Source: Lepidodermella squamata (lineage: Eukaryota > Animalia > Gastrotricha). Taken from it: a stretch of DNA of 64,000 nucleotides. Positions 1 to 55,300 of the stretch are shown piece after piece (position 1 is the stretch's first letter; each line of letters starts with the position of its first letter). The notes beneath the pieces are model-generated. The model was given only the letters and a program-made list of their open reading frames with translations. It was not told where the DNA came from and made no database searches. A program made the translations under genes and the position numbers. Location of the stretch: the NCBI GenBank assembly GCA_047495785.1, contig JBLDXI010000003.1, forward strand, positions 1,984,001 through 2,048,000, written 5' to 3'.

Positions 1-2400
1 GCGCGAGTGGGGGTCACATCGAAGTTTTAAATTATCTCCTGAAGAAGGAACACAATTCTGACGAATTAATAAGCGACAGGAATTTCCTACTCGACTTGAT
101 GATTTGCGGAAAGACTAACAGCAACGAGTCTATCGATAACTTTGTTATGCATTCGGAGGCTCCATTATACACGTCGACTAAACTTTCGCGGGCTTATCGA
201 GAGCTTGCTTCAAAGGAGAAAGAACGAGCGAATGACTTGAATGAAGCTGGTCGGCATTGTGAGAACATGGCGACTGTATTGTTGGGAATCGCCTCTACCA
301 TAGCGCCGCCCTCTGCGATATTACGAGCTGTTGATCCAAAAGGGAAGCCACTGCTCGACGTTCTGTTGGAGAACAACATGAAAAAAGTTGTGGAACATGC
401 AGCTGTTCAACGTTACTTGAGCGATATTTGGGCGGGTTCGTTGTCCTCGTGGTCAACTGGCCGGCTTTTCTTACTGTTTCTTGGTTTCTTATTCTTCCCA
501 CCATTTATGTGTTACTACTGTCTTCCGTTCAAGCACCATTCCCATCATCAGATTCCTGTTGTGAAATTCATAGCCATGGTCACTTCACATCTTTATTTAA
601 TCTTATTACTGTCTCTTATCGCTGGAATTCCTATTGACCCAATCGTTTATCGAAAGGATTTTTACCCGAACTGGCATGAATTAGTGTGCCTTGCAATGGT
701 ATCGGGCATGATAGTCTCGGAGTTGACCAGATCTGGCATGTCTTCTGGGTTAGGAATGCTCCGCTACCTCATAATCTTATTCTCGCTGTTGGCTTCGTTG
801 TTGCAGATCGCTGCTATAGTCGCCGTGTAAGTTTTTAAATTTCTAAGCTCGATTCTAATGGCTTACTATCCTTTTTCAGAGCTCACGATGCAAGACACGA
901 AGCTTTGATACTGATGTATCTGCGCAACTTAATGCTTTCTTTTGCATTATTGTCTGCGATTATTCTTATTGTTGGTAAGTTGATGGCCTCATAATTTCAC
1001 CTGCAGATCATTGTCGATTTTTTTCAGATTTTTTCCTTATACATCATTTGTTTGGACCATTCGGAATCATCATTCGAAGTGTTATGAGAGATCTTGCGAC
1101 ATTCATCGTTGTTCTGTTCCTTTTTCTTATCGCCTTCACATTTCTGGTCTGCTGCCTGTATACACCGATCAAAAAAGACCTTAGCAATTCACCTGGAAAT
1201 GGGACTATCAGGAACTTGACCAATCAGACTGTTGAGACCACGGTAGCTCAGGATTTTCAAGGCGAGCATTTCCTAGTGGACTCAAGTGCGCAATCAAGTG
1301 GGCATGGAGATCCTGATTTAATCACGCAAAATTCCGAAAAGAGCAAAACTAATGAAAATCATGGAGGAAAACCCAAACAAAAGCGATCAGCCGACAACGA
1401 GAGACCTGCCTGTAAGCCGAAAACGGAGAAAGCCGGAGAAGAAAGTAAGGCTAAGGAGTCTAAATCTAAAAAGTCGAGGCGCAAGAAGCGTTCGGCAGAT
1501 CAAGAAGCGGATCCTTCGCCTAATTACGATGAAAGTTACCGGCTGGTAAAAGATGACAGCGATTATAAGATCGTCAATAATTTGCAAGTTCAAGCAACAT
1601 TATAGCGGTGAATTAATGGTTTGTTAATTTTCTAGGAACTACTCAACTCTGATGCTGCTGTTTGAAACGTTCTACTTCTCAATGTTTGCCATGATACCGC
1701 CGGAAATGCTGCCACGTGTGAAGAACGGACCAGAATGGAGCGAAGTGCTTGTTCAATTGTGATTTTCTTCATCTTTCATCGTTCAGATTTCGCATTCGTG
1801 GCTTTTTCAGGTATTTCGCTTGTTGGATGCTGGCAGCTGTTGTCATCCTAATCCCTCTTCTCATTGCCATGCTATCGGAGACATACAAGCGTATCAATCA
1901 AAGATCGGATGCTGAATGGAAATTTGGCAGGGCGAAATTGATCAGAGATATGATAAAGCAGCCGGCAGCTCCTACACCCCTCAACCTATTCGTTAGGCCC
2001 TATTTTTACCTTATGTCCGTAAAACGCCACGGAAGTAGGCCAAATATTTCTAACATGTAGGAATTGTTCAAATCAGACATGTTTAGGGTGGATGTGTACT
2101 TCTTATGCGAGTTATTTTGCTGACGAAGACGAGCACGAGGGCGCAGATGAATTCTTGGACGATGTTGTCCACGCAGCGAAAGTCGCCCTGTCAGGCAGCG
2201 GTAAAAAAGTCACACGCCAGAGGTCTTCGCCAGGTCCTGAGCGCATTGAATCCGTCTTAGATTGGTCCATCGTAGTTCGGCGATACAAATCAGGCTCGAC
2301 TGATGATATAGTCGAAGAAACTACGGAAACTGCAGCCGGAGAAGGTGTGGCCATTAATCCGACGAGCGATGCAGAAGCAGAAGAGGAGAACAAAATGTGA
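1..2400 (+). CDS. nompC: TRPN/NompC-like channel paralog 1 (3' part only; 5' end lies outside the window)
   Basis: Inferred exons: <1-826, 880-974, 1028-1583, 1636-1758, 1811-2034, 2087-2400. The translation shows the post-ankyrin linker (LYTSTKLSRAYRELASKEKERANDL; VQRYLSDIWAG), six TM segments, TRP box EWKFGRAKLIR and PTPLNLF. It aligns colinearly with the three downstream paralogs. Confidence 0.88.
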
Positions 2401-2805
2401 CAGCGCAAATACTAGTGCTAAAACGGAAATTGAATGTCTCACGCTTTATACAAATTTATTTTGCTGTTTTTTGTATGTCCATTAATCATCGCACATTTTC
2501 CAAGTAAACAGAATGTTATTTACGGCTGATAATGGCTTTTGAATGATTTTGAAGTATCTCAATTTGGCAATAATTGGCAATCATATCCCAAAATATTTTC
2601 CAGAATTCCAGACGATTCCTCCTTAAAATTCCGAATTGACCCGAAATAGATAAAAACTCCGCCTTCCGCCATAATATGTTGCAAAACATGCAGAAATGGC
2701 ACACTAGCTGCGTCGAAAATTTTCGGCTAGGAAAAGGAACAAATAACTGGGGTATTGTAGTTTTCTATCAGCACGCGCCTCTTTTCTTAGTTGGGTTAAG
2801 TGATA

Positions 2806-3493
2806 CCGTAAACTACAGTATAAAGGCCGCATCCTGAATAAAGACCGCACCCGAATAATCGCCGCAAAATAGCCCTATTTTCATCAATTCAGCATAAATA
2901 AAGGCCGCGCGCGAATAATCGCCGCACCTAAGCACGCGATCAACAGCCACCCAGGCGAATCGCCAGATGGCACCCCCACTGCGACTCCTCACTCTCAAAA
3001 ATTTCACGCGTGACGCAATTAGGCGATTTAAATCGGTCACGCGTGAATGAGGAAGCTTTTATCACGCGTTACGGATTTTTTGTTACTATTAATAGTAACT
3101 TTTTGACCATTCACGAAAGTATATCACGCGTTATCCGATTTCTCTGAAAAATAGGAGACCACTTTTTATTGTGTCACGCGTGAATCAAGAAGGGTTTCAT
3201 CTTAGCAATTGTGTCACGCGTGAAATTTTTGACAGTGCTACCGCTACGCCGACCTACTCCCTACTCACAAGGTGACGTCGAGGAGGCGGATTATCCGAAG
3301 AGCCGCGCGTGAAATGGCGGTGCAAGCCCCTTGTTACACCTGTTACGCCTGCTACAACTAAAGTTTTGAAAAATTGAGGGAAATAAAGACCGCACTCGAA
3401 TAATCGCCGCACTCAAATAATCGCCGCACTTTTTGCCTCTTTTTCAAAAATCAGGAAAATTAGTCGCCGCGGCCTTTATACTGTAGTTTACGG
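2806..3493. mobile_element. Non-autonomous Tc2/pogo-like MITE
   Basis: Terminal inverted repeats CCGTAAACTACAGTATAAAGGCCGC / GCGGCCTTTATACTGTAGTTTACGG, TA on both flanks (2804-2805, 3494-3495), subterminal (AATAATCGCCGCA)-type repeats, no coding capacity. Confidence 0.85.
2990..3237. mobile_element. CAC...GTG-ended MITE nested in the Tc2-like MITE (CMC/CACTA-like)
   Basis: TIR CACTCTCAAAAATTTCACGCGTGAC / GTCACGCGTGAAATTTTTGACAGTG, CT dinucleotide on both flanks (possible 2-bp TSD), repeated internal TCACGCGT motifs. Confidence 0.65.
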
Positions 3494-3534
3494 TATTTGT
3501 TTTTCGCAGCTTTAAATAATAATGACAACTGTAA

Positions 3535-3910
3535 CTCAAGGAAAAATAGCAACTCATCAACGGTCAGGAATATCATCTGGAAACAAATAAGATATTCAGA
3601 ATCGGCGCAGAGCGTTAGGCTGGTTACCTTCTTAATTGCGCACACAATCACTAGTACCTAAGTAAAATATGGGTATGCGGTCGGGTACCAGCAAATGAAC
3701 GAATGCGCGCAAGCTCGCTAGTTTGGCCGTGCGCGTCAACGTGTGCACGCGCGCCTGCTATGTTACGCATTTCAATGAAACTTAGCGCATTTAGTTCTTC
3801 ATCAATTTGGAAGGTAACTGCGCGCAAATTCCATCAAATTTCCAACCTAACTTAAGCGCTGATTCTGAAAATCTAATTTGTTTTCCATTATTTTTGACCG
3901 TTTGGAAAAT
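3535..3910. mobile_element. Foldback/MITE, same family as 16600-17048
   Basis: Imperfect long inverted ends (AAACAAATAAGATATTCAGAATCGGCGC / GCGCTGATTCTGAAAATCTAATTTGTTTT). Both the ends and an internal segment (GGAAGGTAACTGCGCGC) match the 16600-17048 copy in opposite orientation. Boundaries are approximate. Confidence 0.6.
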
Positions 3911-4301
3911 TAGCATTGCGCGAGCGAACGTAGCACATAAAATAAGCGTTTTAGGACATTTTACATTTCAAATTTCGCAGGAAATCATTCATGTTTTGCA
4001 GCTCTGTGCCTATATTTAAATTCGCACATTCAATTTCTTGTTTTCCAGTATTTAGGCTTCGCAGAAAATTCAACCGATAAAAAGGAAGTCTCAAATTATT
4101 GCTTTGACCTACTTGTGCACGCACTGGTGACCTGCTTTAAATGACTAGCCGACCCACATTTCCATTAGCGCGCGGTATTTTATTACCCAAAACTACCTGC
4201 TTGCGATAATGACTGTTTGCTTCATTTCGGAAACGATTTGAAGCACCCCATCAATAAGGACTGTCGATTTTTATGTGTTTTAGTCTTTTAGATATTTTGA
4301 C

Positions 4302-7300
4302 ATGAGTGCAGTTCCTACTTTCAACTCCCTGGTTTTCCTCGGTCGTTTGAGAAGATCAATCGCAAGAAATCAAGCCGCTGACTCGTTAGAAGTCCCCCGA
4401 ATCGAAGAGCCCCGCCGCTCTATCTCAGGCGTTGTCCATTTCGCCTTCGACGTCGATGAACTCTCTGAAAAAAGCGAACCGGCAGAGAATGACGGGAGAA
4501 ACGACGCCAGTGATTACGAACCATCCACGCCATCGATGGGCGACAGCTCAGACATGGGCAGCGAAAACGCGGACGACGGGTCAGTTGACGGTGACCTGGA
4601 CGACGCGATACTCAAATCAGCCACATACCGCAGCATGGATCTGCTCCATTTCAACCGAAATAAAGACCTGTACTGCCTTGTGCAGAAGGCGAAAAGGAAG
4701 CAATGGACAGATGTTGAAGATCTGCTGCTAAGAAAACTTAAGCGGAAGGATAAAAGCCTCAATGCCGCTCATCCTAAAACTGGAGAGACAACGCTAATGT
4801 TAGCGTGTAAACACGAGCGATTTTTAGTCGTTCGTTTGCTATGTTCGCTCGGCGCTGCGGTAAATGTGAGGTCAAATGACAGAAAAACAGCCCTTCATTA
4901 CGCCGCGGAATTTTCACATGAACAGGTCATTCGCGAGTTGTTGAACAACGGCGCTGATCCTAATTTATTCGGCGGCGAAGATATTCAGTTACCGCTTCAT
5001 ATCGCCTCGGCTCGGAAGACAGGCGGTTTAGTATCGGCCTTGGCGTTATTAAGGGCGAGTTTAAAATCTGTCCTGCTACTCAAGGACGCGCTGGGTAATC
5101 TGCCGATAACTTACGCGGTTCAAGTTGGGAATACGAATTTAATTCGTGAGATGTTGCATGACTGGCAGGCGGAGCAAACGCAATGGCAGGCGGATACGCG
5201 GGAGGGCGATTACCTTGTCCACATTGCGGCTCGTATTCAGAACGTTGATGTTATGTCGGTGTTGGGCTTTGACGGCGGTGCGGATGTGAATGTGAGGAAT
5301 AAGGACGGCCAGACGCCGTTGCATATTGCGACGAAATTGGGCGATTTGGCGATGGTTAAACTGCTGCAGTCGCTCAAAGCTAGTCCTGATATCATTGATC
5401 GGAAGGATCGCGCACCTGTAAGTTCGATAAATTGCACTTTTGTCTTGAATAAAACTTTGCAGAAATTGGCTCATTAGCCTCTGAAATGATAAATTAAAAA
5501 ATAAAAATAGAAAATTTGAGCATGAACAATTTGGTGACCACGAAGAAACGAACCCGAGGCGCCTGCAAACGCTTCGAGTAATAAAATCAGCGAAAATAGC
5601 TATTTGAGCGTTGACAATTGAAAGGAGTTTGCTTATTTTCTGTAATTTCCAGCAAATTGCAAAAAAACCCATTAGAGCCCAACGGCATCTTTTCCTGCCA
5701 CCCTATATTTAAAAAATCCTGTAGGGTGACTACAACCCCCGGGTGTCTAAAAGCATATCTCCGCACTGGGAAATCGTATAAATTCGGGGAAAACGGATAA
5801 ATGACCAGTGTCTCGTAGACTTGGTGATGAGCTAGGAGCCGTTTTTTGGGACTGTCGCTAAGCTGCACGAAAGTGTCATCAAAATCGATTTTGCACGAAG
5901 TATCACCTATTACCCAACTGAATGCATTTCTAGATAGATCTCATCACGCTGATGAACTTTTTCTTTGAGAGCGGCTTCCTAGCTATCACCGTTCTTGAGA
6001 TAATCGTCCAGGTGTGACAAAAGGTAAGGTCACGTGACAACTTGACACTGAAATATCTCAATAACGGTAGATGATAAAATTATGCGGTTTTCAGAATCTG
6101 AATCCCCGAATTTTTCTCTATCGGAAAAGCACGTGTCAATAGGGAAAGAAAAATTAAAAACTGATGAGCAAGATTCTCAAAGCTGAAAAATTAGAGATTC
6201 GTGTGGTTGTAGGCGATTGATATCAGAGTTTTGCCAGTGCGCAATTAGGCCCGAATCAGGCTCGTCATTGGATCCGAAATCCAAAAGGATTCGGTCTAAC
6301 TAAGGAAAGTACCGATTATTACCGAACCAGGTATCATCGGGTTTCAATTCTTCGTGGTTGAATGATGGTAGAAAGTCTTGTTTAATTTGATTTTTGAAAA
6401 ATAAGTTCAGATTTAATTATTTTGAATTTTAACTGAAAATTATCAATTTTAATTGAAAATTTTGAATTTCAATAAATGATTGAAATTTTTTTAAAATTTG
6501 ACCAAAAATCGCTGAGACACGCGACTTTATATATTTTATATCGATGATGGAAAATGAAATGTGTAGTTTCCTTCCCTTCTCACTTTGTTTTCGCTTGTAA
6601 TGAAGCCAATTTTTCGTTTTTATAGCTGCACATTGCCGCTGAGTATGGATATACAAAAATCGTCGATTTCCTAATAAATCGCTACAAGGCCGAAATTACG
6701 CTTCGCAACAAAGACGGCTCCACCTTAATGCACCTGGCGGCTGATCGCGGCTTCGCAGACACCGTTCGGCTTTTCATTAACCTCGGCCTACCCGTTAATA
6801 TGCCCAACAAAGCCGGGACTCTCTGCATCCACGCCGCCGCGAAAAACGGCCATCTAGCCGTTCTTCACGTTCTAGTCGATCGAGGCTCGAGCATCGACGC
6901 CCGAAATCGCGAGGGCTACACCGCTCTGCATTTAGCCGTGATTGAAAACCAGCCTGAAATGATTCAAGCCCTGCTAGGCTATGGGGCTAAGGTCGATTTA
7001 AGGGGCGGGCCGTTGAAAGAAGCACCTCTCCATATCGCCGCCCGAATGCCAAATGGCTTCAATTGTGCGGAGATGTTGATAAAAAGTGGGGCAAATGTGA
7101 ATAATGCGACCGAGGAGAACGGCGAAACGCCGCTGCATATCGCGGCTCGGGCTGGTTCTGTCGATTTGTTGGTGATGTTGCTCGAGGAAGGCGCTGATGC
7201 TATGAAGACGAATAAATACGGCGAGACACCCTTGCATTACGCTGTTCGGCATTGCCATTTCGATATTGTCAAAGGTAAAACCATTTTTTAATATATTTTT

Positions 7301-10300
7301 TTAGTTTTTTGTAATGTCCGCAAACTTTGACAAATTTTATGCCTAAATTTTTGAATTAATTCGATTATTTATTCCATTATTAAAATTGAAATTTTAAAAT
7401 TTGGAAGTTTTAAAATAACCCTTCATACCTATTTTTGTAAAAAAATTTGTAAAAACCGTTAACAAGTGAAAAGTCAGGTTTGGCGAAATTTTGGACATCG
7501 TGAGATTTTGATGCCACTTTGACGAGGAGTCAAAAGATATAAAAAGAAGTTGGTAGCCATCAGGGTTAGAGAGAAATCGGGCTTCAAATTTTACGGCCGA
7601 AAAATTTTAATTTTGAAAATTGGCGCTTGAAAAATTACTTTTTATCGCATCTATGAATCATCCACGACATGAATTCTGATTCACAGTTTCTTATTCACAG
7701 TCGACATTTTATATAGCCATCTGAGGTTAGGAATTTCGCTGAATATTCGAAAGGTTTTGTGGAATCAAGCTAGTGGTTCCACATCAACCTGGATCGATAG
7801 GACTTGAAATCTCCTGTGTTTTAAGGAGGATGGTAGCATCCTCAACGTCTGAAATTTGAAAAGTTGATATCCTGAAGATAAACTGAATGAGGACATCTTG
7901 GAATCCGAGAGTCGTCCTTCTTCAAGTCATCACACTTTTTGCGATTTGCTGGAAAATACAGAATATTCGCCAATCCCCACTTTTCACTTGTTAACGGTCA
8001 AATTTTTTTATTTAGAAAACGATTATTTGAGTTCGGGAATAAGGGTTAGGATTGGGGTTCAGGGTTCGGGTTTAATTTAGGGTTTTAGGCCGATTTTCGG
8101 GTTTTAACAAAGTTCGATAGCCCTGGTAATTAGTCCTAAATGCCTTCCGCGATTTTCTCGATGAGACACTTGATCAATTATTGTAATCTGGGCCGGGCTG
8201 GAAGTATGCAAGAGATATGCTGCAGACTCGAAGTTACAATAAAATTGAGGATACGGGTCTTGTTAGGATCATTTTAGTGACAAGGATAAGGATATATCTT
8301 GGGATTGGATCCCTTCGCGGTTTTGTTGTAGAAAAATTTCTTTTTGATGTGCCGTGATGCTTGGCCACATTCGGAGAGGACGCAATAGATAAAGAATATA
8401 TTTCCGTTTTGCCTACGAAAATTTCCCTTCCAATTGGATTTGCGGGAAGCTTTGAAAACATTGGTTCACCATATTTTTCATATGGGGCCGAGAAAACAAT
8501 GGCAATAAGATCTGTAACTACCTCAGGAGACTTATTTTGATAGCAATGGCATGCTACTCCGTACCTCCCGTCGCAAGTCGTGTAACTACAAGATTCCGAT
8601 GCATACATCACTCGTACCACGTTCGACATTAGTTTTGTTTGAGAAGAAAGGAAAAACTGGGCGAAACGGAAAAGATCAGAAAACAATCGAAACCAGTCAG
8701 TCGTGAGTTGTTCGCTGGGCAGGAACCGCTGTCCACCTTCATTTTCTTGTTTGGTAATTCCAGCATCAGTGATTCGCGTTTGTCTGCCAGTTCTTTAGCT
8801 CATGCTTGTTGTTTGGGTATGCTGCTCGTTCTTCGAAGTGTGCCACCATTTTGTTGACTCGAATGCAAGTCAAGTCACATTTTGTGCAAGTGACGTTATT
8901 CCCAAGGCCGTATTTGATGAAAAACAGTTTCTTTTTCCATAGCACATCTTTTTCGGCCAGTTCCAAGCTTGAGTTCGACTCGGGTTCGTTTTTTTCCACT
9001 GCAGACTTTTTGAGCTCAATGGGTTGCTTTGGGACTGTGAGACGGTCGAACTAACAGTGGCTGGGTGTTTCCTTATCGGGGTCTTAGAAGAATTGGATGT
9101 GTCGTCCTCTGATTCTTCCGTCGTAAAACTTGGCCGAGTTGATAGATTTAATATGGTCATCTAGTTTCTTTGGTTTAGCTGTGGCTTCTGGTACTGTGAA
9201 CCCGTAATCATAAAAAAACAATGACCAAACCTGTATTGGGTTCCGTTCGAATGGTTTCAAGTGGCCCATCCTCTACCGAGGGTGCATTGCAGCGTAGTTG
9301 TTAGACAGATCAATATCTGGTCGCCAAAAGTGGCTTCAGTATCGAGGGATGTGAGCTCGGAAACTGCATGGCTTAGCCCATCGTTTCTTGTCTGTTACCA
9401 GGCCAAGAGGGAAATCTTCAGCGAATGCCTCTATTTAGCTTTTTCATGAGAAGATTCTTGATTTTCCTGAAAGTCCTGGACGTGGCCATTAGTTCCGAAG
9501 AGTAGCCTCGTGATTGGATCTTGGCCGAGTTTTTTGTGGATTTAAAGCCCGGTCAGAATAGGAAGATGCTACTCTGCAATAAGACGAGATTTTTCGCTGA
9601 AAATATGTCTCGGAAGCTATTTTTTCCAAAATTTCAAGATTCACGAACTGAAATTATTTGAAATTTTTTGATTTTAGCTCTAGTCTATTCGGCTCACTCC
9701 TCAGCTATGAAAGACAAAGATGCGGCTAATTTGGTAAAATTGGCGAATAACGAGGGTGAGACAACGTTCCATCTAGCCGCCGAGCTTGGAAAATCTCAAA
9801 GCCACCTGCCTTTTGAAGAAATCGATATCGTCCGATTGCTGTTGGTTAACGGCGCCGATCCTATGGCTGTTACGAATCTCACCCACGAAACAGCTCTTCA
9901 CTACTGCGCTCGATCTGGGAATCCTGATATTTGCCAGGAGATTGTTCTACATCTGAAAGGGTCGTTTCAAACGGCTTGTAACCGCCAGGATAAGTCCGGC
10001 TGGTCGGCGCTGATGACGGCCTGTGAACAAGGCCATGCTGGTGTTGCCGAGGTCCTGCTGAAACACATCGCAAGAGCTGATGTTTTCGATGACGTAAATC
10101 TAAAAAATTACTTCCAGGCTTTTTCATGGTTTTTTTTTATTTTGAAAATTTATTTATTTATCTGATTATTTAAAAAAATCAAAAAATTCCAATTTTATTA
10201 ATCAATTAATAATTGATTAATTTTATTATAATTTTATATTATCAATTAATAAATTTTATTAATAAATTAGGAAAAAGATGCATCATAAAATTGTTCGAAA

Positions 10301-13300
10301 ACTTGAACATTTCAATTTGTTTGAATTTAATTTGAAAGTTCGACATATTTTTTTTTTCAATTTTTTGAGGTGTGACATTTTTTAATTTTTGCTATGTTTA
10401 GTTCGGAAAAGCTGCCTTACATTTGGCGGCCGAAAATGGCCACATTTCTTGCTGCGAAATTCTCCTAAAACACAAGGCGTTCGTGAATGCTAAATCGAAA
10501 CTGGGACTGACCCCTCTTCATTTCGTAAGCTGCGATGAAATACTTCACCATTATCAATTTTCGGCTTGTCTAATTTTTAAGGCGGCTAGTAGCGGATGGG
10601 CCGAACTGGCGAAATTGTTGATAAACGAGTACAACGCAACGGTCGATGCGTTTACGCTGGAAAAAAAGACGCCGCTTCATTTCGCAGCCGCAGCCGGGCG
10701 GCGAGAAGTTGTTCAGGCTTTGCTAAGGCTGGATGCTGATCCGAATGCAGAGGATACGGTATAAACATTCGGGAAAGAATTATTTTATTCTATTAAATTT
10801 AGTTTTTCAGCTTGGACAAACACCCCTTCATTTGGGTAATTTTTCATGACATTTTCCGAATTTCGATGTGGATTTTCACCGATTTTAGCTGCCGAAAATG
10901 ACCATGCCGACATTGTCAAAATCTATACGAAATTTCTCCCCGAGTTGCTAACAGTAGTCAATAAGGTTGATTTTGCTTTTTTCGATTTTGTGGAATTTTT
11001 CTACATTTTTCCGATTTTTTTTTCCAGAACGGTATGACTTGTGCGCATATCGCAGCGAAAAGCGGTGCCGCAAATGTTATCAAAGTTTTGATGGATTTCA
11101 AGCGCAGTTTTGTGACGACGACGCGAAACGACTTGAACAGCACGCTGCCGATTCATTTAGCCGTCAGTGGCGGCCACAAGGAAGTTGTTCGCGTCCTTAT
11201 TCAAGCTGGAGCCCTGGCTACGGCTGAAAATGCCGAGGGCATGACTGCCATTCATTTGGTACTAATTTTTCATAATCTGCCTCAGAATTTTGTTCAATTC
11301 TGTAGGAATCAATCAAATTTTCAATTTCGAATTTCGTTTTGGAAAAAAAATTGAAATTGAAATTTTCGGAATTTTCCATGCATTTCCAAAGTTTCCGAAT
11401 TATTTTTCAAGTTCCACCCCCATTTTAGTCATATTTAGTCAATCTATGATTTTTTGGGTCTTGAAATTATTCTTGATTCGTTTCTCTTAGGCTGCCCAAG
11501 CTGGAAATGTTGAGGTCCTGCAGTCTATTCCATCTCGAGTTTCGCTCCAATCTCACAGCAAGAAAAACGGACTGGCTGCTATTCACGTCGCCGCTTTTTA
11601 CGGAAATGCCGAGGTTATCCGGGAACTTCAGACCCGGGTCAATATCAACGCTATGAGTCACGTCGCTACCATGCCCGGAGTCATCAACGACCAACAACTA
11701 CGATCGCTTATCAGTACAGATGTAAATCAAAAATTTGGATTTGATCTGGGAAAAAGATTTTTTCTGAAAAAATTTGAAATTATCGATTCCTTGTAGTTTG
11801 AATTTTTCACCGAATTTCACAATTTTCAGAAAAATTTCAAAATAAAAAAATCAATTGAAAAAGTTCGAATTCAAGTTATTCTCAGCATTTATAATTCCGA
11901 ATTCTCAACTTCATCTTTTAATTTTTTTAATTTAGTTTGGCTTGACCCCATTGCATATGGCCTCCTATACTGGGCGTGAAAATGTCGTGAGGCTGATATT
12001 GAACGACGCCCGCGTCAATACAGAGTGCATGTCCACCCTAATGGGTCGGCTACCCATCTTCTTCGCAGCTATGAACGGCCATCCAATAATCGCTAGTCTA
12101 CTTCTATCCCGATCAAGTGACCACCTTCATGCTCGAGATTCGCAGCAGAGGACGCCGTTGCACCTAGCGGCGGAATACGGGCACCTGGAAATGGTGGCCA
12201 TGCTGATTGCCCAGGGTGCGGATATCGACGGCTGGGATGAGCAAAATTGGACTGCACTCCACTGCGCGACTAAAAGCGGCCATTTTCCTATTGTTAAGCT
12301 TCTTGTGGAATCGGGTAAAATACTTGATTTAAAATTCTAAATTGATCGGAGTTAAATTTTAAAAAATTAAATTTTTCAAATTAAATTTTATGAAAAAATT
12401 GAAAATTCAAATTTTAAAAAATTCACGTTTTTATTATTTATTTTGAATTGAAAATTTGAATTTCTTTTAAATTTAAGGAGCATCAACATTCAGTCAGACT
12501 CTCGAAGAAAAAACTCCGCTAATGCTAAGTGCGGCCGGGAATCATTTGGACATTTTCTATTTCCTTCTCGAAAAGCCTCACGATTCGAATAATCTGATGG
12601 AGAACAAAACGTTCCTCCTTGATTTGCTACTCTGCGGCAAAGCAACCGGCTATCAGTCGATTGAGGCGTTTATTTTGAACTCTGAAGCTCCGCTGTTAAC
12701 TGCCGCGACTATGGCTCATGTTTACCGAAGCATGGGCGCCCGGCATGGCGAGCGGTCGAGAGAATTTCAGCGGCTCCACAGGTATTGCGAGCGATTTGCG
12801 ACGAAACTACTCGGCATTGCGGCTGAAATAGCGCCACCGGCTATTGTAGTCCGCTCCACTGATGCCAAGGTGAGTAATTCCTATATAAAATCAATCCTGT
12901 TTATCATTTTGAAAGGTTTTGGGCATTCGCCTAGGGCGTACTTTGTCGTCGAAACGCAACATTTTTAATCGACCGAGTACAATCAATTTGGGGGTTTTAG
13001 AGATGCCGTGGTTAACATGAAAAGATTGGCCCGAACCGGCGGGGCCAAAATCCAAACGAGTCCCGGGTTAAACCGATGTTGACCTAATTAGCCGAATTTA
13101 CCTTTAGGTTACAAAGCTACAAGTCTAGAAATTTACGACGATAGTGAGTTTTGAACAGACTCGAAACAGTGGGGAAATGAATGTGAAAATGCCGTGTCTC
13201 CTTTATGATATGGAAATTTTTATAAAAATTGAGAAATAGATATTTTAGGTAGAATAGAAATAGATATTTTGAAGTATTATCTACCATGATATCGCTATGC

Positions 13301-16300
13301 CATCAAAAAATCCGCTTCGAAAATTGAGAAGGTTTACTTTTTTCAAACACTTGACATTCCACAACCATGAGGTTCATATTTTGACCATCAACAACAGAAC
13401 CCGTGTGGGTAATCTCACAAAATCGCATGGGCTAATTCTTTACCGTTAGTGAGCCGTAGTTGCTCTAACTTGAAAAAGGGAAAATAGGACTTCAGGGTTC
13501 TATTAATTTGCATGAAAGCATCACCAACACCACAAAAGGTAAAGGGTGGACTAGGAGCGGGCCCGATGACAGGCGGTCATTGAGGACGACTACTGGTGAC
13601 TTCATCGTCGTTGGCGGACGTAAGCGGACGCCTTCGATTTGCTCGCGAAGTGGCAGCACATGTCTCGGCGTAGCGGACTTGAACTTGGGAGAAAAACTCT
13701 GAAAGGCGACAGCGCCGCTCGAGATCGGTGATGCGAACGCGGTCAGCCAGGCGAACGTTGAGCATCGCACGCAGGCACTTGTTCTGGAGGACGTCGAGGC
13801 GGCGTAACTGTTGCTTTGCAGCCGAAAGAGGCGATCGAGCGGACGAGAGCGAGGTAGCTGGCACGACGCCAGCGGAAGGAGAGCCCAGGGCGCGGAACGA
13901 TGGTGTAATACCAATCCCAGCAGCCGGGTAGACTTTCTTGTTGCATATTTCACCCTGGTCCCGGACCAGGCCATGTTAGCAGAGTGAATGAACGGCCCTC
14001 ATGGACTCACTCTCAATAAGTCATTAAAATTGGCAAAATAGGGAGTGGAACTTGACAGGAACAATCCGGGACATTCTGACAACATTTCGGAGGATTAATT
14101 CCAAATTTAAAGTGTCTACCTGGCGCATCCCATTTTAACTTGAAAATTCTTGAAATTATATAATTATATATTTCTATAATTATTTCAAATTATAGAAACA
14201 ACTGAATTATTGAATTTTTATTTAGGGAAACGAATTTCTCGACCTCATGCTACAACATGATATGAAAGAAGTCGTCGAACACGCGTCTGTTCAGCGGTAC
14301 CTGAGCGATATTTTCGCCGGCTCTTTGTCAACATGGCCTAGAGGCTCGTTCCTCTTTCTGCTCCTGATTTTCCTGATCTTCCCGCCAATAATGCTGTACT
14401 TCTGCGTTCCGATGGGCAAGGCCGCCTACCATCGCATTCCAGTCATCAAATTTCTAGCCATGATTGCCGCTCATTTTTACGTGATTGTTTTTCAAACAAT
14501 TATCGCATGCATCCCACTCGATCCGATAATTTATCGCGTCAACTACCTACCCAACTGGTACGAAGTAGTCTATCTAGCCCTGATTGGTGGAATGATCGTG
14601 ACCGAGTTGACGAAAAGTGGGACATCAATGGGACTGGGCGGCTGGCTGCGTTACGTCATCATCTTTTTCAGCATTATAGCCGCTCTTTTCCAAATTGCCG
14701 CAATCGGCGTGGAGTGAGTTATTCATATTTTATTAACTTTTTGTGTTTTTGCATTTTTCGGTAAATTTTTAAAATTTGAAACCCAAGAATTTGAAATTTT
14801 GTAGAATTTTTTAATTTGAATTTTGAAATTTTCAATTTCAATTTTTGAATTAAAATATTTTAAAAAATTCATTGAAATGTAAAATTTTGGTTTACAGCTT
14901 TCAAAATGATGGGCGAACCGCTGATCTCGTTCTAATGTACCTTCGCAATTTGATGATATCATTCGCTCTTTTCGCAGCGATAATTCTCATCTTGGGTAAG
15001 AATACCTATTTTGGCCAATTTTTCTCGGCTTTCATAAACAATTTTAACCAGATTTCATCCTAATTCATCATTTATTCGGCCCATTTGGAATCATCATCAG
15101 CAGTCTTATGAGAGATCTACTCACGTTTATCGTCGTGTTGATGATTTTCCTCGTCGGTTTCGTCTTTTTGATAGCTTGTCTATTCTCGCCAGTTACTAAG
15201 GACGCCGCCGTTCTGAAAAATAACACCAATACAGGCCTAACGAACCCGATACCACCACCTATCGATAACATGCGCCCATTTTCGGTCCTGCAAGCTGCGA
15301 ATACGCTTAGTAAATCGATGCGGAAAAAGCGGGAAGCAGAGTTGAAAAATTCGAAAATTAAGGTGGATCCACCAGAAACCGAAAAGCCTCCGAAATGCCG
15401 ACCGGTGTCAACCGGCAAAAATCAACCACCTGTCGCGCCCAAAGTTCGAAAGCGTCGTGATACGGGCGATTTTAACAGTTACGGTCGACTGGTTAAAAAT
15501 GACGACGACGAATTTCGGGTGATAAATAACATGGATTATTCTATTATTTTGGTCCTATTCGAAATTCTCTATTTCGCCATGTTCAACATGATTGGCCCTG
15601 AATTGCTGCCGAGGATAAAAAATGGACCTGAATGGAGCAGCCCGTTGATTGTGATGTTAGTTATCGTCCAGCTTAAAATCTCAATTTAAAATTTTTTTTT
15701 CTAATTATTATGAACTTCAAAATTTCAATTTTTATTTAAATTGATTTTTAAAATTCCCATTTCAATTTTTGAATTTAACTTTTAATTTTTGAAATTTCAA
15801 TTTCAATTTATTTTTTAGATACTTTGGTGCCTGGACCTTGGTTGCTTGTATTGTCCTGATCCCTCTGCTGATCGCCGTTTTAACCGAAACTTACAAAATG
15901 ATTCACATGCGGTCTGATCTCGAGTGGAAATTTGTTCGCGCAAAATCGATCCGCGACATGATCAAAATGCCAGCAGCTCCTACGCCGCTGAACCTCTTGG
16001 TCAGGCCGTATCTGTACATACGGGCGATTATGCGGCAGGGAAAGCGCATGTTCTCGCCATACGCTCAGTTCTATGTTGATCAGTACGAACATGTCGATGA
16101 GTTGCACCTGGCGGCGATTGATAAATTGATCAATCGACACGAATCTTTGAGAAGTCGCGGCGGGCGGATTTTGAGATTCCTGAAACGGAGGATGCAGGAT
16201 AAGGGCGTGTTGCCAGAAGAGGCAGAATCAAGTTAGCATAATTGATTATAATTTCCAAATACAGTGAAACCCCGATTTTGCGCCCTCGGATTTTCCGCCA

Positions 16301-17949: not shown

Positions 17950-18263
17950 TTATTCGTTTTCAAATTAATTAATTGAAAATTTAATTAAAATTGAAGTTGT
18001 GATTGTTTATTTTATTTAAACTAATTTAATTTTTTTTAATTTTAATTTTAATTTAAAAATTGTTCTCATTTGCAATCGATTCGAAATTATTCTTGTGACC
18101 TTGTTTTTCATTGTGATTAATAAAAATCGATTTTATTAGTTATTTCCTGATTTTTCTGTCGCCGCATAGCAACCGGTGTTGTTTCCTGTTGTAAGCGTCG
18201 CGCTTTCGATTATTAATTACGGCGAGAATTTTCGCATTCTGGTCAGTTTTGAGCTTACGCGAA

Positions 18264-39953: not shown

Positions 39954-40369
39954 ATGATAGAACAATAAATCCTCCTTAACAATTTTGAAGTGCACTTTAT
40001 TCCGAATTTTATTTCCTGTTGATCTCAAGGTATATAATCTATAAAATAAAACACAAATTTTGTTCCGCATGATTCATAGGAGGCGATTTTTTTTTATTTC
40101 AATCAGTCTCGAGGGTGTTGGTAAACAAAATTCGCTCTCGAGTTCAAGATGGCCGGCGTATAGTAGTATAATAAAGCGTAGCAAAACGTAAAGCGTTATC
40201 GATTTTATATGGGCGAAACACGCCGCCGTCGGCAACGTGTTTATTCGACCTCTTCCTGCGCTGTATTTTTCTTTCTTATCGCATGTGACCAGTCTATGAT
40301 TTGCATTTATTTATAGCTATGACCTTCTAGAATTTACTGTATTTTTTAGATTTTTTCATGAAATTTTGA

Positions 40370-43300
40370 ATGTCAAGCCCGAGTAAGCCGGGCTCAGCGA
40401 AAAGCCGGGCATCATCGCCCGGGGATGATGATTCATCATCCAGCGCCTCTCAGCCCTCAGCCGCTCACCTCGCGCCCGCTCACCCTGGCGCCCAGGGTGC
40501 TGCGTCACCCAGGTCACCCCGCACGGCGTGGACGGCAAAGCCACCGGTTGAGGAGGAGAAAAAGGCGTTGATTGTCATGGCGCAGCGCAGCGAATGGGGT
40601 GCGATCGAGCAGGCGTTGAAATACGCGTCGAAGGAGATTTTAAAGCCGGATCAGTACAAAGACCCGAGAACCGGCGAGACGGTCCTTATGCTGGCAGCTA
40701 GAGACAGCCGTATCGTAATCATCGAACGGCTGTGCGAACTTGGAGTCAACATCAACGATAAAACTACGGTAAGCTTTTGATTTGAACTTCAAATTTCAAA
40801 AATGGTAAAATTGTTATGATTTTCTTGAATTTTCAAAAATTTCAAAAGACTCGACATTTTTGGAAAATAATTTTTGTGCAGCAATTTTACCTTGTTTTTC
40901 AAATTTTTCAAAATTTCAAAAATCAATCAATTTTTTCAATTTTCAATTTTAATTATTATGAAAAAAATGAAAATTCTTTAAATTTTGAATTTTTGATATT
41001 TTTATTAAATAATTCCACTGGTGGATGGTGGATGATAAATAAACTCATTTCATTTATGGTCATTTAGTAATTTTTTGTAAATTCTAGGATCGCCAATGTG
41101 CTCTGCATTATGCTGCTATGAACTCGCGAGAAGAATCTGTGAAAACTTTGCTGGCTAAAAAAGCGGACACGCTAATAGCCGGTGGTGAAAGTAACCAGTT
41201 ACCCCTCCACATTGCCGCTTCTCGAACAGCTGGTGGCTTTACGATTGCCCAGATGCTTCTTCGAGCCATGCCTAAGGAAGGTCGATTGATGAGAGACGCT
41301 GATGGCAACCTGGCTATAACCTACGCAATTGAAGCGGGTAATAAATTGCTCATTTTTATTAAATTTCTCACGCGCTAAATTTCGGTAAAATTATGAAAAA
41401 TGTAGCAAAGTCGATTTTGCATTTTTGAAAAAGTATTTTAGGAACACATACGATGATGCATAACTCATTTAGCCCTTTCGAATGGTATATATCACGAATT
41501 ACGTGAAAAATTGAATATTTTTGCAATACCACATTTCAGGCGAGTTTTTTTCATTATTTTTATAGGATCTCTGCCCCTCGTCAAAGAATTATTAGGCGCC
41601 TTCGCCGCCGATCAGGTCAAATGGCAGTCACGTGACAACCGGGGCGACTATTTGATCCACATAGCCGCTCGAAAGTCCGATTCTGAAATTGTCAAATGCC
41701 TCGTTGCATCAGGTGGGGCTGATGTGAATGCACAGAATAATGATGGTCAGACCGCACTGCACATCGCCGCTCGTGTTGGCGCCGAAATTATTGTTAGAGC
41801 TTTGTACACGCTGAAAGCTGACTGCGACATTGCGGACAAAAAGCATCGAACACCGGTATGAAAATTGATTTTTTTCGAAATTTTCAATAAAATTTCAATT
41901 TTTCAATTAGCTTCTACTCGCAGCGGAACATGGGCGAACAGCTATATTGGAAATGTTGGCCGAGCGATTCAAGGCCAATGTTCAGATGAGGACGAAAGAT
42001 GGCTCCACCTTGATGCACTTGGCCAGCGAGGTGAAAAAAAATTGAAATTTGAAATTCTGAAAATTGAAAACTCTCCCTTAAAAATTTTAATTTTTTCAAA
42101 ATTAATGGAATTCTCTGACGAATTTTACAGCGTGGTCATGCCGATACTGTGTTAGCCTTTATCAAACGCGGTGTCCCACTCTTCATGCCCAATAAATCTG
42201 GCACGCTTTGCCTTCACGTCGCCGCTCAAAATGGGCACGTCAAGGTCGTTAAAACGTTGATTCAAAAAGGCACGCCAGTCGATGCGCAGACCAAAGATGG
42301 ATATACTGCCCTGCACTTGTCTGTCCTGCAAAATCGGCCAGATATCATTCAAACGCTGCTCGGCTACGGCGCTGAGGTCGATTTGAAGGGCGGCGCTGCT
42401 ATGGAGACGCCACTTCACATCGCGGCTAGGCTACCTGATGGCCTGCGAAGTGCGGAAATGCTACTCAAATCAGGCGCCAGTGTCAACGAAACCACGGAAG
42501 AGGTCTAAAAAAATATTTAAAATTGTTTTGAAAAAATGAAAAAAAATTGAAAAATCAATAGGTACTTATCTGAAAAGATCAAAATTGACGATTTTACAAA
42601 ACTTTTAAATTCTTAATTCCTAAAATTCCTAAAATCCTAAAATCCTAAAATTTAAGTCAATTTGATAATAATAACTTATCTTTTAAAGCGAACTTTGAGG
42701 ACTAGAAGGGCATGGCATTTAATACTCTAACCTCTAACCCTAATTGGTTGTAAGTGAGTGGGATGAACATTTTCGTATATGACGGAATTTGACTGGTGCG
42801 TAGTCTAGCTGACACTCCCATCCTCGAAATTTTTCATTTTGTGACGCGATGGATTGGTAAAACCGAGGGGAACTCAATCCTGATTCTGCCCTTGTAGGAC
42901 TTGAACCCAGACCCTCAGATACACAGTAGCTCAACGAAAGACTCCCGTCTCCGTAACGATGAACCCCGAATTTTGTGAATTGCCGCGCTGGCGAGTGATT
43001 CGTTCGCTCCGCATGACGCAATGGAGACAGTTTCGCGATTTAGAACCTTCCACAGGCCAAGCGTTAGCCGTCGGTTCCCCCTCAGTGGAGACTAGTAGTA
43101 GTGGAGTAGAACTGCGTCAGGAGTTTAGCCAGTAAGTTAGCATGGCGAAAGGCAGGCGAATACTGTTTCTCATCCGTTGCACGGATTTGTGATCGGCATT
43201 GACCTGTGAAGACATAAAATAGGTAAAATAATAGATTTGTCTTCAATTTTTGTTGCTTGACGTCCCAAACGCTGGGCTACATCGTCCAATTTTTTGAAGA

Positions 43301-46300
43301 TGATTAGACAGAGCGACCTTAACAACGCATAAAACATCGCCATTAGGCTAGGTGGCACCGCCTCTCGATCAAAGTTCCACGTAATCACTGTGGAAAGCAT
43401 CGGTAGGTTTCAGGCCCAGTTTTTTCGTTATGAAACCCGCTATCCAGGCGATTTTGTGATGGTCGAACGTTAGGTGGCTTGGCAAATGAATTCGATGAAC
43501 ATTTGACATCTTCGCCTTCTCCCAGGCCATTTTACCTACGTCTCGTGGCATTGACGGGAGCTGTTCGCGATTAGTAGGGGCGGTAACAGTCTTTCATTTA
43601 ATAATGGAGCATGAGAGCGACCTTGCGAGAACTCATTATCCATAGACAATTTTGTTGAATGATGTAAATCGGGTCCCGGGTCCGCCAGTGGTACCGAGTG
43701 GTACCAGCCGATAAGCATAAGCACCCGATGAACGAAAATCATTTTTATTTTTCCTTCACTTTCCTTGAGCTTGTTGGGGCCCGACCACAAGTAAGCGGGT
43801 TACTCGGCGGGCAGTCGACAGCAACGTGACCATAGTGATAGCATTTCCGACTTGAACGGGAGGCCGCAGATGGCGGACTTTCACTCGCCGATTGAGCCAT
43901 TTCAGCCCATTGACTCGAGCATCACCATACGCATCGAGCATCGTTGCGAGGACGATTTAATCGCTTTAAGTTCAAAGTAGGCCCAGCAGTCTGACTACGG
44001 GGGATGCGCTTCGAGGTGCCGAACCGCTTCGCCGGGCAGCTCAAGAGGCGGTCGTAGGGCACACGTTTACTCTCAGCGCAGATACTAGAAGAAAGTAACG
44101 CACCCGTAGGTAAGAAACATGGGAGATACCAAGTCGTGAAAGTGATCATGCTAAGTTAGCCGTAGGCACAATAAGAGTATGCAATCTAAACGAAATAAAA
44201 GGTCCAAGTATCAAGTTTTGTTTTGTGTAGGAGGACTCATCAGTATATGAGGTCGTATTTGATTTGAATGAGAAAAATGGCAACAGCTGAAAGTTGAAAA
44301 TTTGTCTTTGGTTTTAGACTGGAGAATCGCCGCTACACATCACAGCGAGAAATGGCTTCTTGGACCTTCTTAAAATGCTGCTAGCCGAAGGCGCTGACGC
44401 GACCCAAACTTCAAAACAAGGCGAAACAGCTCTCCACTTGGCCGTATGATTTTTTCGGAAATAATTCGAATTTTTTAACAATTTTTATCAAGGTGCGACA
44501 TTGCCACTACGATATTGCGAAGGCGCTGATAAGTTTTGTCAAAGACAACCGATCAGCTCGAGAAGCGACTAATTTAGTGAACGTGGCTAATAACGAGGGC
44601 GAAACATGTCTCCACTTGGCGGCCGAGCTCGGCAAAAGCCAGGCCCATTTCCCGTTCGAGGACGTTGATATGGTTCGGCTGTTGCTTGAAAACGGGGCGG
44701 ATAACTTGGCCCTGACTAAGCTGACCATCGAAATTCCGTTGCACTACTGCGCTCGGGCTGGGAATGCTGAGATTTTGCAAGAGATCGTCTGGCAAATGGG
44801 GCATAATTTTCAGAGCGCCTGCAACAGACAGGCGAAAAACGGCTGGTCGCCTTTGATGACAGCCTGCGACCAGGGCCATGCGGCAGTTGCTGAGATTTTA
44901 CTTACAAATAATGCACGTGTTGACGTTTTCGATGAGGTAATTTTTTTTAGATTTTTGTTTTGAAATTCTATACAATTTTTGTGTTATTTATCAGCATGGC
45001 AAAGCGGCTCTTCATTTAGGTGAGCATTTTATTTATGTCGATTCGAATTCATTTTGTTCGATTGGAAATTGGTGTTCAGGAGAAATAGGGTTTCAGCTCT
45101 GTATTTGAATTTTGGAATTAAATTTTCAAATTTTAAATTTTTTAAATTGAATTTTTAAAAAATGAAAAAATTCGTCAGAGAATTCCATTAATTTTAAAAA
45201 AACTTAAAATTTCTTAAGGAAAGTGAACCATCTTTTTTTAATTTATGTCTAACAAATTGACCTAATTATTACGCGTATTTTACGCTAATAGCGATCTGTT
45301 TACGAGCTATACAGAGCCAATATCGATTTCAGTTATCGATTTTACAAATCAGTGATTTTTCCGATATCGGAAGTTTTGCAATCTAAAATTGCAAGCACTT
45401 CTACCTTCATGGCCGTTGTTACCGGTTGCAAAATCCGAAGATCCCCGGTCATGGATGCCTTCAGTATCGACCGAAAATGAAAAATTCAAGCAATTAAAAT
45501 AGGCATTTAGAATCGTTCAATTTAGCGCTGGAATCTTAAAATATCGACCTTATTAAAAAATTTAAAGCGCCAAAGGTCAAAAGAAAACTTCAGATTCAAT
45601 CTCCAAACAATTCTCTTGCTAAACAGAGATTTGTGGATTCTTAAAATAACAGCCGAGATAGCTCAGTTGGGAGAGCGTTAGACTGAAGATCTAAAGGTCC
45701 CTGGTTCGATCCCGGGTCTCGGCGTAGCAATGTTTTTTGCCACATCTTATTTTAAGATTTTGAGACAGTCGAGTGAAGTCTTTGCTTTTCAGTTTGCTTT
45801 TTAGTCAGGCTGGCCCGTTGGTCTAGGGGTATGATTCTCGCTTCGGGTGCGAGAGGTCTCGGGTTCAATTCCCGAACGGGCCCATTCCATTTTTTTCACA
45901 ACTTGAGCTGATGACGATTTACACAGTCCACACTTAGTGCGAACAGCAGCTTTAAATTATGAATCATCGCTGCATTTTTTGCATGTGATGATTCATAATT
46001 TTTGCAAAAAGATCACAACAAGTGAATAGCACAAGAATTTCACACCTCCCTGATGGTCTAGTGGTTAGGATTCCGCGCTTTCACCGCGGCGGCCCGGGTT
46101 CGATTCCCGGTCAGGGAAAATTTTTGGGATTTTTTTCCAATTTTGATTCTGTGCAAGATCAAAAGTGATGGAAACCCGCTGAATGTCCCATTGATGAACT
46201 TTTTGATTAACCCTTTATGGCCATGATTCGTTATGAAAACTAACGAATTTTCTGAATTCATCTAGATGTATCTATATTCGAAAAATTAATGAAAAAATTG

Positions 46301-52300: not shown

Positions 52301-55300
52301 CTACTCAACATCCCAGGCGTGCAGACGGACGAACAAACAGCCGTTCTCAACGTGTGCCCTATGCACTACGCCGCATCTAACGGCCATCTAACAATCATCA
52401 GTCTACTCCTCTCAAAATCAACCGAACACCTGCATTTACAAGACAAACGCGGCCGAACCCCGTTGCACCTCGCCGCCGAAAACGGCCACGTCGACATGGT
52501 ATCGATGCTGCTCGGCCAGGGCTCAGACATCAACGGCCTAGACAAAAATCTGTGGACACCCTTGATGTACGCGGCAAAGGCCGGGTATCTAAACGTCGTT
52601 AAACTGCTCGTTGAATCAGGCGCGGCGACTGCTCGAAAGACGATAGACGGCAAAACAGCCCTGGCCCTAAGCGCCTCGGCTAATCACAACGAGGTCCTGA
52701 GCTACCTACTATCAAAAGACCACGATACTTGGCAACTGGTCGACGATCACGGCTTCGTTTTCGATCTAATGATCTGTGGCAAGGCGAATAAGAACCAGTC
52801 GATTGAAGAGCTGGTCATGCATTCTAAGGCGCCGCTAGACACAGCGGCGAAACTCGCGAAATTATACCGAGTTCTAGCCCTGAAAGAAAAGGAACGAGCT
52901 AGGGACCTAAACGAAACTGGGAAGCATTGTGAGCATATGGCGACTGAGTTGTTAGGAATCGCGGCTAATATGACCGCCCCGTCTACAGTCCTACGAGCGA
53001 CTGATAGCAAGGGCCGGCAGTTTTTAGACTCGCTACTCGAGGACGATTTGAAGGAGGTTGTCTCAAACGCGGCGGTTCAGAGGTATTTATCCGATATCTG
53101 GACGGGTAGCCTTTCGACGTGGTCGATGTCTCGAATGTTCATCCTATTTGTTTCGTTCATTTGCTGCCCGGTTGTTTGGGCGGTGTTCACGCTGCCGTTG
53201 CCGCATATTTACCACAAAATTCCGATTGTTAAATTTATGGGCCTGTTAGTTTCGCATGTGTACTTTTTGACGATTATCACGTTTATCGCCGTGATACCGT
53301 ACAATCCGATTGTTGATCGCGATCACATGGAGCCGGATTGGCTAGAGTTGTTACTGTTGTTGTGGGTGTCGGGCATGATGGTTGCCGAGTTGACGAATAA
53401 CTCGGCTGGCCGGACGGGTTTGGGCTTGTTGAGGCCGGTTATCGTCGTTATTTGCGTTTTAGCAGCATTTATTCATACTGTGATTTTGCTATACGAGTGA
53501 GTTTATTTTTTTAGAATTTTAGTGGGTAATTTTCTGGGTTTTTTTTTAGTTTTATGACCGACGACCACGATACAGTTGTCCTTATGATGTATATTCGCAA
53601 TCAATTTCTATCTCTTGCGATATTTTCTGGCATCGTGCTGATTGTTGAGGTGAGGCTCATTTAAAAAAAAATTACAATTAAAGTTTGAAAAAAATTGAAA
53701 ATCACCTCGAATTTTTTTTAAAATTTTTATGGTTACATTCTGTACAGAAAACGAAATTTTGACAGCAAAACGAGGATAAAGTTGAAATTCAAAATAAATT
53801 CTCCAAATCTTCTGGAAAACTTTCCTGAACGCTTAAACAGAAAATGAATTTGAGCGAGAAAATTGGCGTGGAGAAAACGCTTTTTTTATTTTCTTGTACA
53901 TTGTTATTAATTTTAGAAAAAATTCCGTCCAATTCGAATTGATTAGGAGTAATTTGTGTTAAAGCGAGAGCTTGCTTTTTCTCATTAAAATTTATGATTC
54001 ATAATTCAAAAATGCCCCTTTCCAAATTTTCTGATCTTGCGAAATCCCCGAATTTTAACCATTTACATGGTCTACTGAGATATATATTAGGTAACATCTC
54101 GAAATATAGGTGATTCATCCCTAAATTTTAAGGAAGAACGAAGTACGTGGCTCAAGTTTTCGAGCATCCATTTTCATCTATTTTGATCGTTGATTCGCGA
54201 TTTCAAAGCTATTTCTGTCTGAAATGAGGAAGAGAATGAAAAAGTATTATCATAATTGAAAGAAAATATGACAAAAACAGCAATACATTTTGCAGATTAT
54301 CCTTTTTGGCGGATTTGCAGATTTGGCGGAACCAAATTATAGAATCTTGCAAAATGTGAACTATTCACAAAATTCAATCTCAAATAACATTGCTGAATCA
54401 TGATTGCCCCATTTTATCGAATTGATGATCAGACCTTTTATTAAAGCAAGCAGGGTTTTATGTGAATTTATTTGGATTTTTCAAAAAAATTTCAAGATCC
54501 TCAAAATCCAAATTTGCACTAATTTCCGTTTAATTTTGGTCCAGTGTTAAATCTTAAAGCTCATAAATCAGTTTGGGAACCACCTTTCAAATAAGATGGG
54601 AAGGCTTTTTAGGGACTATCCTTTAATTATCCTTTCTCTTTGCAGTTTCTGACATTTCATTACCTATTCGGACCATTCGCCATCATCATCAGTACCTTGA
54701 TGAGTGACGTACTCATTTTCTTGGTCGTACTCTTCCTCTTCATCGCCGGATTCGCCCTTCAAGTATCCTGCGTCTATTCGCCCCTCCGCGATCTGAACCA
54801 GGGCGACGATATAACCACAACACAAGCAATTGATCTCGCAACAACTATCGCACCCAACACGGAAATGAGTAGATACAGACGATCACCAGATGAAACATTC
54901 CACGGGCCAACTTCAGTGTTCCTAAACTACCTATCACATGTTCAGGAATTCGCCCGTTTTCGGAGAAGTGCGGACGGAGGGGAGAATTATACGTCTCTAG
55001 ATGTTACAGACGACCTACCGATAACAATAGGACCTACAACCACCGTCGATAAATTCGTGTATACAGACGAGGAGATAGCTAATCTCGATCTAACCCTATT
55101 GGGTGATACTTCAATAGAGATGAAGCTACCAACCGGCGAGAGACTGATCAGGATTTACAAATGCCCAGCGCCTGGGCCGAAAATACATAGCAAAATCGAG
55201 TACGAAGAGGTGGATGAGTACTCGAATGAGGACGGGCTGACAGTCATCAAACTATTCACAATCTTCTTTTTCGCACTCTACGGCATCGGCAATCCTAACA

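Follow-up and report, generated by a model that had tools for sequence, protein, structure and literature searches.

How the outer face of a force-gated channel might be built and controlled is the question raised by a stretch of 64,000 nucleotides from the gastrotrich Lepidodermella squamata (contig JBLDXI010000003.1, here C3, positions 1984001–2048000), referred to throughout as the window. TRPN/NompC is the best-understood candidate for a TRP channel gated directly by force, and the accepted account of its gating, built on the ankyrin spring inside the cell, leaves the outer side of the protein largely unaddressed. An earlier note, made from the letters of the window alone, had described four TRPN paralogs here, each with a long insert in the pore turret (the loop between transmembrane helix S5 and the pore helix) carrying two multibasic sites of the type recognized by furin, and had suggested that these channels mature by excision of the peptide between the sites. 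By sequence comparison the genes are TRPN members with a new form of pore turret, and processing of that turret by a proprotein convertase is the best single explanation for its motifs, to which we give an even chance of being correct.

The identity of the genes can be settled by comparison with known channels. An all-against-all comparison of open frames showed one gene repeated four times in tandem along the + strand of the window, and the best solved-structure match of the largest exon of paralog 4 is Drosophila NompC (PDB 5VKQ, E 3e-175), with the best stretch running from the last ankyrin repeats through S1–S4 (NompC residues 973–1387). The S5 encoded by the motif-bearing exon of paralog 2 aligns with NompC residues 1418–1462. 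The frog TRPN (P0002) is colinear with paralogs 2, 3, and 4 without a break from about residue 11 to 1540–1570, and the part of paralog 1 that lies upstream of the window is also colinear with it. The long N-terminal ankyrin array typical of TRPN (about 29 repeats in that family) is present, as seen from multiple matches to NompC and ankyrins and from the colinearity of paralogs 2–4 with frog residues of about 11–1040, and so is the six-helix TRP core, comprising the linker with S1–S4, S5, the pore helix, S6, and the TRP box EWKFGRAKLIR; array, core, and TRP box are the features shared with Drosophila NompC and other animal TRPNs. Among 1.84 billion proteins, the top matches are of the TRPN type and include a protein with the name “no mechanoreceptor potential C”, and TRPA1 scores far below them. 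Because of the NompC matches, the frog colinearity, the upstream continuation of paralog 1, and the TRP box, all four window genes are identified as full-length TRPN/NompC-type channels, in agreement with the family named in the earlier note. The genome holds at least seven copies with a long turret, all on contig C3, namely the four in the window, paralog 0 just upstream of these, paralog 5 on the opposite strand 21 kb downstream (in which one open frame covers the turret, pore helix, and S6 together with some of S5), and paralog a.

What distinguishes these genes is the stretch from S5 to the pore helix, which is hydrophilic and measures 138, 113, 179, and 148 residues in paralogs 1, 2, 3, and 4, within the range of about 100–200 residues first estimated, and 113–445 residues across the long-turret subfamily. 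When the proteins are aligned with four other TRPNs (frog, nematode, horseshoe crab, and nematomorph), every extra residue falls after the S5 end, which reads YQPV in those TRPNs, and ahead of the pore helix. The same loop has only 11–29 residues in 21 other TRPNs (62 in one beetle model), with no multibasic motif and no cysteine, so the insert is unusual for the family; the sequons, the single cysteine, and the convertase-type motifs of the present genes are lacking in those TRPNs. Each of the four window turrets contains exactly one cysteine, and N-glycosylation sequons number 3, 1, 6, and 1 in paralogs 1–4 (1–33 per turret across copies), with Thr-rich tracts in addition in paralog 4, all of which agrees with the original description. 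The filter region of the long-turret copies also departs from the FGLVEPD of other TRPNs, reading F-A/N-M-x-x-P-E/D or, in paralog 4, YGIGNPN.

The turret is predicted to be disordered: an AlphaFold model of paralog 2, computed from shallow alignments, has a predicted local distance difference test score (pLDDT) of about 40–50 across the turret versus 71–91 for S5. A Pfam scan of six turrets found no domain, the two matches below the cut-offs being at chance level. A search of the pore-helix piece against solved structures likewise gave no matches, and the pore helix was therefore placed by family alignment. By homology to NompC and other TRP structures the turret, being the S5–pore-helix loop, should face outward, in line with the extracellular position assigned to it before. 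The turret of paralog a (L014:1738–3221 = C3:1694738–1696221, ~1.69 Mb) spans 445 residues in one open frame and has 33 N-glycan sequons; it is rich in Thr, Ser, and Asn and mucin-like, with RPKR near its end and a single cysteine nine residues after this motif.

Are the multibasic motifs more than an accident of composition? In-frame translation reproduces all eight motifs of the window paralogs (Table 1), and a recount of the distances between the putative cleavage points again gives 35, 42, 45, and 28 residues for paralogs 1–4. The furin consensus followed by Ser, Asp, or Glu, as given in the earlier note, fits most of them: strict R-X-[KR]-R is found at seven of the eight sites, the exception being K-X-K-R at site 1 of paralog 1 (KQKR), and Ser, Asp, or Glu follows at seven of eight, the exception being the Lys after site 2 of paralog 3. 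Site pairs occur in the four window paralogs and in paralog 0, single sites in paralogs a and 5, and each of the seven long-turret paralogs has at least one strict motif. The seven turrets together contain 11 strict motifs versus 0.48 expected from composition, a number reached in none of 20,000 shuffles, and shuffling of the individual window turrets for [KR]-X-[KR]-R gave P = 0.0009, 0.038, 0.016, and 0.0012 for paralogs 1–4. Within the same genes, seven strict motifs fall in 578 turret residues versus none in 3,397 non-turret residues. The enrichment is clearly non-random. The turrets of paralogs 4 and 5 are acidic (3–10% Lys + Arg, 15–18% Asp + Glu) and most of their Arg sit in the motifs, and therefore what is kept is the pattern as such, beyond mere basic composition. 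Paralogs 0, 1, and 2, and gene A from a related species, have the cysteine inside the spacer between the sites. Paralogs 4 and 5 have it elsewhere in the turret, and in paralog 3 it precedes both sites and is adjoined by an extra dibasic site (NVKR). A C-[KR]-P motif is likewise within the spacer of relative gene A and of paralogs 0, 1, and 2, but not within that of paralogs 4 and 5.

The related species was recovered from metagenome contigs (L022–L024), and a nine-turret alignment includes its gene A together with paralogs 0, 1, and 2 and the Logan-derived relative P0163. As the earlier note had observed for the inserts, the turrets align poorly (30% mean column identity, S5 included), and the codons of the motifs differ between paralogs. 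Site 2 (R-x-K-R, then Asp, Ser, or Glu) nevertheless falls in a single column for P0163, relative gene A, and paralogs 0, 1, and 2, and a conserved segment, G-R-[LV]-V, follows 10–15 residues later. The motif-bearing exon of paralog 4 has an ortholog in the relative, P0165, with 54% identity (the two relative contigs that carry it are identical to each other), which retains the two sites at matching positions; between the two proteins no alignment is possible over the first third of the turret, the spacer is only partly kept, and the last 70 residues, with the cysteine in YKCPAPGPK, are well kept. Conservation in a related species, which the earlier note had named as a test, thus holds for both sites of paralog 4 and fails in part elsewhere, as both sites are gone from relative gene B and those left in gene C are weak. 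Retention in seven of seven long-turret paralogs and in the paralog-4 ortholog indicates that the multibasic motifs are under selection.

A tree of the S1–S4 region places the TRPNs of this genome and of the relative in one clade of their own (98/95), split into a group with a short, Cys-rich turret (100/98) and the long-turret group (98/96). Within the latter, paralogs a, 4, and 5 branch off before the three tandem genes of the relative join paralogs 0–3 (99/97), and because of these early branches the motifs are as old as the subfamily itself and have persisted through a species split. A homolog search with the paralog 3 exon gave no matches. The alignment of the whole exon contained no stretch sufficiently conserved for a metagenome scan; a scan with the S5 alignment gave 600 pattern matches, none of which was confirmed, and the matches to the S1–S4 alignment were all distant TRPNs whose turrets are of the common short kind. 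None of the genome copies identified (about 12–13, forming one lineage-specific clade) shows the customary HHLFGPW/FGLVEPD signature.

Two observations concern these relatives in their own right. The short-turret subfamily occurs in the same genome (C54:1.908M, C15:3.152M, C24:2.632M, C19:0.418M, C3:2.537M, and C3:2.556M; L016–L021) and in the relative (L025); its turret has P-x-C-P after S5 and, in one copy, ~6 Cys in 35 residues, carries no multibasic motif, and the group is sister to the long-turret group (100/98). In the turret of P0163, and only there, the conserved Cys motif is followed by RGD (C-R-P-R-G-D) at residues of about 130–140. P0163 was also considered as a spliced transcript, which was ruled out, as its end reads into non-coding-like sequence and a relative has no intron at that junction in its genomic DNA.

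If the motifs are used, the exposed turret would be cleaved there by furin-like proprotein convertases, at a single motif or at the two of them, in the late secretory pathway. Each subunit would then consist of two chains held together in the tetramer and the membrane, an N-chain with the ankyrin array, S1–S5, and a glycosylated stalk, and a C-chain with the conserved pre-pore segment, the pore helix, S6, and the TRP domain. Use of both sites would remove a spacer of 28–45 residues, and the probable effect would be to free the glycosylated stalk and to open up the pore's outer mouth or alter its shape. Ser/Thr-rich tracts precede some sites, and O-glycans on them could regulate the cutting. 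Candidate enzymes are encoded by the genome: the proprotein-convertase P domain (PF01483) has ten matches, at least eight of them strong, on eight contigs and at no fewer than eight loci. Two of the P-domain loci (C46:1076098–1076355 and 1084423–1084680) lie 8 kb apart on the same strand, a tandem duplication.

Several points weigh against convertase processing. Site 1 of paralog 1 has no Arg at P4, the P1′ residue of site 2 in paralog 3 is Lys, which is unfavorable for cutting at that position, and paralogs a and 5 offer a single site. The lost sites of relative gene B and the weak ones of gene C imply that cleavage is not indispensable in every member. Glycans, N- or O-linked, might shield nearby sites from the protease, confidence in the structure models is low (a second model, of paralog 4 with three sequences, had a mean pLDDT of 39 and was uninformative), and, as no RNA run with the locus was found, exon structure and expression are inferred. 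A more specific proposal modeled on ENaC, in which double cutting removes a short basic spacer lying over the outer pore mouth and so turns a silent precursor into an active mechanosensory channel of two chains, with the freed glycosylated stalks as tethers on the outside, is improbable in our judgment. The spacer is poorly conserved between paralogs, the cysteine is within it in some copies and outside it in others, and gene B of the relative lacks both sites, and for these reasons the parallel with ENaC is drawn as an analogy only.

Among the alternatives, it is very unlikely that the insert, or part of it, is absent from the mature message or protein, for example as an in-frame intron, or that some copies are unexpressed pseudogenes. 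The exon models were built from open frames and splice signals only, tandem expansion often leaves dead copies, and a search of sequencing runs with paralog 2 (11900–16400) returned no RNA run and one DNA-type run with 90% of the words, introns included. However, the 113–445 codons of the turret are open in twelve copies from two species, the other two frames being full of stops, and with about 6% stop codons expected the chance of such an open frame is about 1e-3 or less for each copy. The conserved pre-pore segment continues downstream of the turret in the same frame, the relative's turret shows a synonymous excess (two population variants of its gene B differ at 18 codons of the exon, 12 synonymously and 6 non-synonymously), and all three complete genes are colinear with full-length TRPN, unbroken. 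In paralog 1, the intron at 1584–1635 is the sole junction that keeps the frame, yielding NNL-NYS (compare NNM-DYS of paralog 2); the next intron of this gene (1759–1810) is likewise 52 nt long and has GT-AG ends.

If the insert is translated, the motifs could still be functionless relics of an ancestral basic segment in a fast-evolving, tolerated loop. The poor alignment of the turrets and the loss of both sites in gene B fit such decay, and paralogs are non-independent samples, but the flanks have diverged past alignment and the codons have changed while the pattern was kept in all seven paralogs and across species; this, the excess of motifs over expectation, their confinement to the turret, and the presence of early subfamily branches older than the species split make decay hard to credit, and we hold it to be a long shot. 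Somewhat less doubtful, and still not likely, is that the motifs are selected without being cut, as positive patches on the outer mouth that tether the channel to anionic matrix or cuticle outside the cell or adjust how readily cations reach the pore. TRPN channels probably act together with attachments outside the cell, the core around the motifs is generally rich in Lys and Arg in paralogs 0, 1, and 2 (16–20% Lys + Arg), and relative gene C has kept basic residues without a strict motif. The motifs of paralogs 4 and 5, by contrast, are isolated tetrads in strongly acidic turrets, unlike a polyanion-binding surface, and it is the exact R-X-[KR]-R with Ser, Asp, or Glu that is kept rather than general charge. 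A motif exposed in the secretory pathway would, moreover, be hard to shield from the convertases that the genome encodes.

The turrets of TRPV1 and other TRP channels face outward, vary in length, and are often glycosylated or disulfide-bonded; they are the same S5–pore-helix loop, but the known ones measure tens of residues, and literature searches found none reported as a convertase substrate. Full-text searches found no report linking NompC/TRPN or a TRP turret to processing by furin or another convertase, in line with the earlier note, to whose author no such description was known. TRPML1 (mucolipin-1) is cut in the loop after its first membrane helix, away from the pore. According to PMC5030800, which cites Kiselyov 2005, the luminal cut of TRPML1 by cathepsin B affects channel activity, and this is the nearest TRP precedent; there, however, cathepsin B acts in lysosomes and activity is lowered, whereas here a convertase, a different loop, and the opposite effect are proposed. 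In ENaC, furin cuts twice during biosynthesis, which takes out inhibitory tracts and increases the open probability (PMC10178586). ENaC's alpha and gamma subunits resemble the window paralogs in having paired furin-type sites around a short extracellular tract, but the folds are unrelated, the ENaC tract lies in a large folded ectodomain rather than in a pore turret, and the spacer here is poorly conserved, with one site or none in some members; an inhibitory role here would be conjectural.

Table 1. Features of the four TRPN paralogs (nucleotide positions in the window unless another contig is named; a slash marks the putative cleavage point in a motif or the splice junction)
Feature	Position	Strand	Evidence or remark
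Paralog 1, 5′ part	upstream of the window, L013 5391–8993		colinear with frog TRPN
Paralog 1, exon with S5 and 138-residue turret	1028–1583	+	open frame 979–1602, TTTTTCAG acceptor, NompC-like S5, frog colinearity
Paralog 1, site 1, KQKR/SAD	1375–1386	+	in-frame translation; Lys, not Arg, at P4
Paralog 1, site 2, RKKR/SAD	1480–1491	+	overlaps KSRR just upstream
Paralog 1, GC-AG intron, 52 nt, turret to pore helix	1584–1635	+	TT/GCAAGT ... TTCTAG/G
Paralog 1, pore-helix exon	1636–1758	+	
Paralog 1, S6 and TRP box (EWKFGRAKLIRDM)	1811–2057, 3′ limit approximate	+	
Paralog 2, whole gene	4284–16233, approximate limits	+	colinear with frog TRPN residues 20–1538
Paralog 2, S5, 113-residue turret, and pore helix in one exon	15052–15655	+	open frame 15048–15686, NompC S5 match, splice signals, TRPN alignment
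Paralog 2, site 1, RKKR/EAE	15321–15332	+	
Paralog 2, site 2, RKRR/DTG	15447–15458	+	shares an alignment column with P0163, relative gene A, and site 2 of paralogs 0 and 1
Paralog 3, whole gene	18195–37867, approximate limits	+	colinear with frog TRPN residues 12–1550
Paralog 3, S5 and most of 179-residue turret	34178–34856	+	open frame 34171–34950, donor CAG/GTATAT, phase fits acceptor 37241
Paralog 3, site 1, RQKR/DTS	34588–34599	+	
Paralog 3, site 2, RVKR/KSG	34723–34734	+	Lys at P1′
Paralog 3, pore-helix exon	37242–37364	+	after 2.4-kb GT-AG intron, phase fits
Paralog 4, whole gene	40370–55905, approximate limits	+	colinear with frog TRPN residues 11–1570
Paralog 4, S5, 148-residue turret, and pore helix in one exon	54646–55352	+	open frame 54613–55353; 54% identity to ortholog P0165
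Paralog 4, site 1, RYRR/SPD	54871–54882	+	aligns with RKKR/HDD of ortholog P0165
Paralog 4, site 2, RFRR/SAD	54955–54966	+	aligns with RFRR/QSN of P0165 and RSRR of paralog 5

The surroundings of the four genes contain several repeats. A dispersed element is common to two intergenic regions (3463–3657 and 16539–17106), paralog 3 includes a local duplication (23664–24497) and is followed by a 119-nt tandem repeat (37920–38167), an intron of paralog 4 holds an inverted repeat with arms of about 250 nt (46237–46747), and a microsatellite of 41 CCTTT copies (56652–56856) lies just downstream of the same gene. Farther downstream, both on the + strand, are a gene for a ZPR1 zinc-finger protein (59207–61066, E 2.6e-33) and a receptor gene with an ANF_receptor ligand-binding domain (61594–63957, E 2.9e-17) that reaches the end of the window.

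If convertase processing is correct, these channels would have a new layer of control in the form of maturation by cutting, a pore-forming subunit made of two chains, and possibly an outer tether, and they would be the first TRP channels known to be processed in the pore loop. Even without cutting, the genes offer a clear example of how far the turret of a TRP pore can expand.

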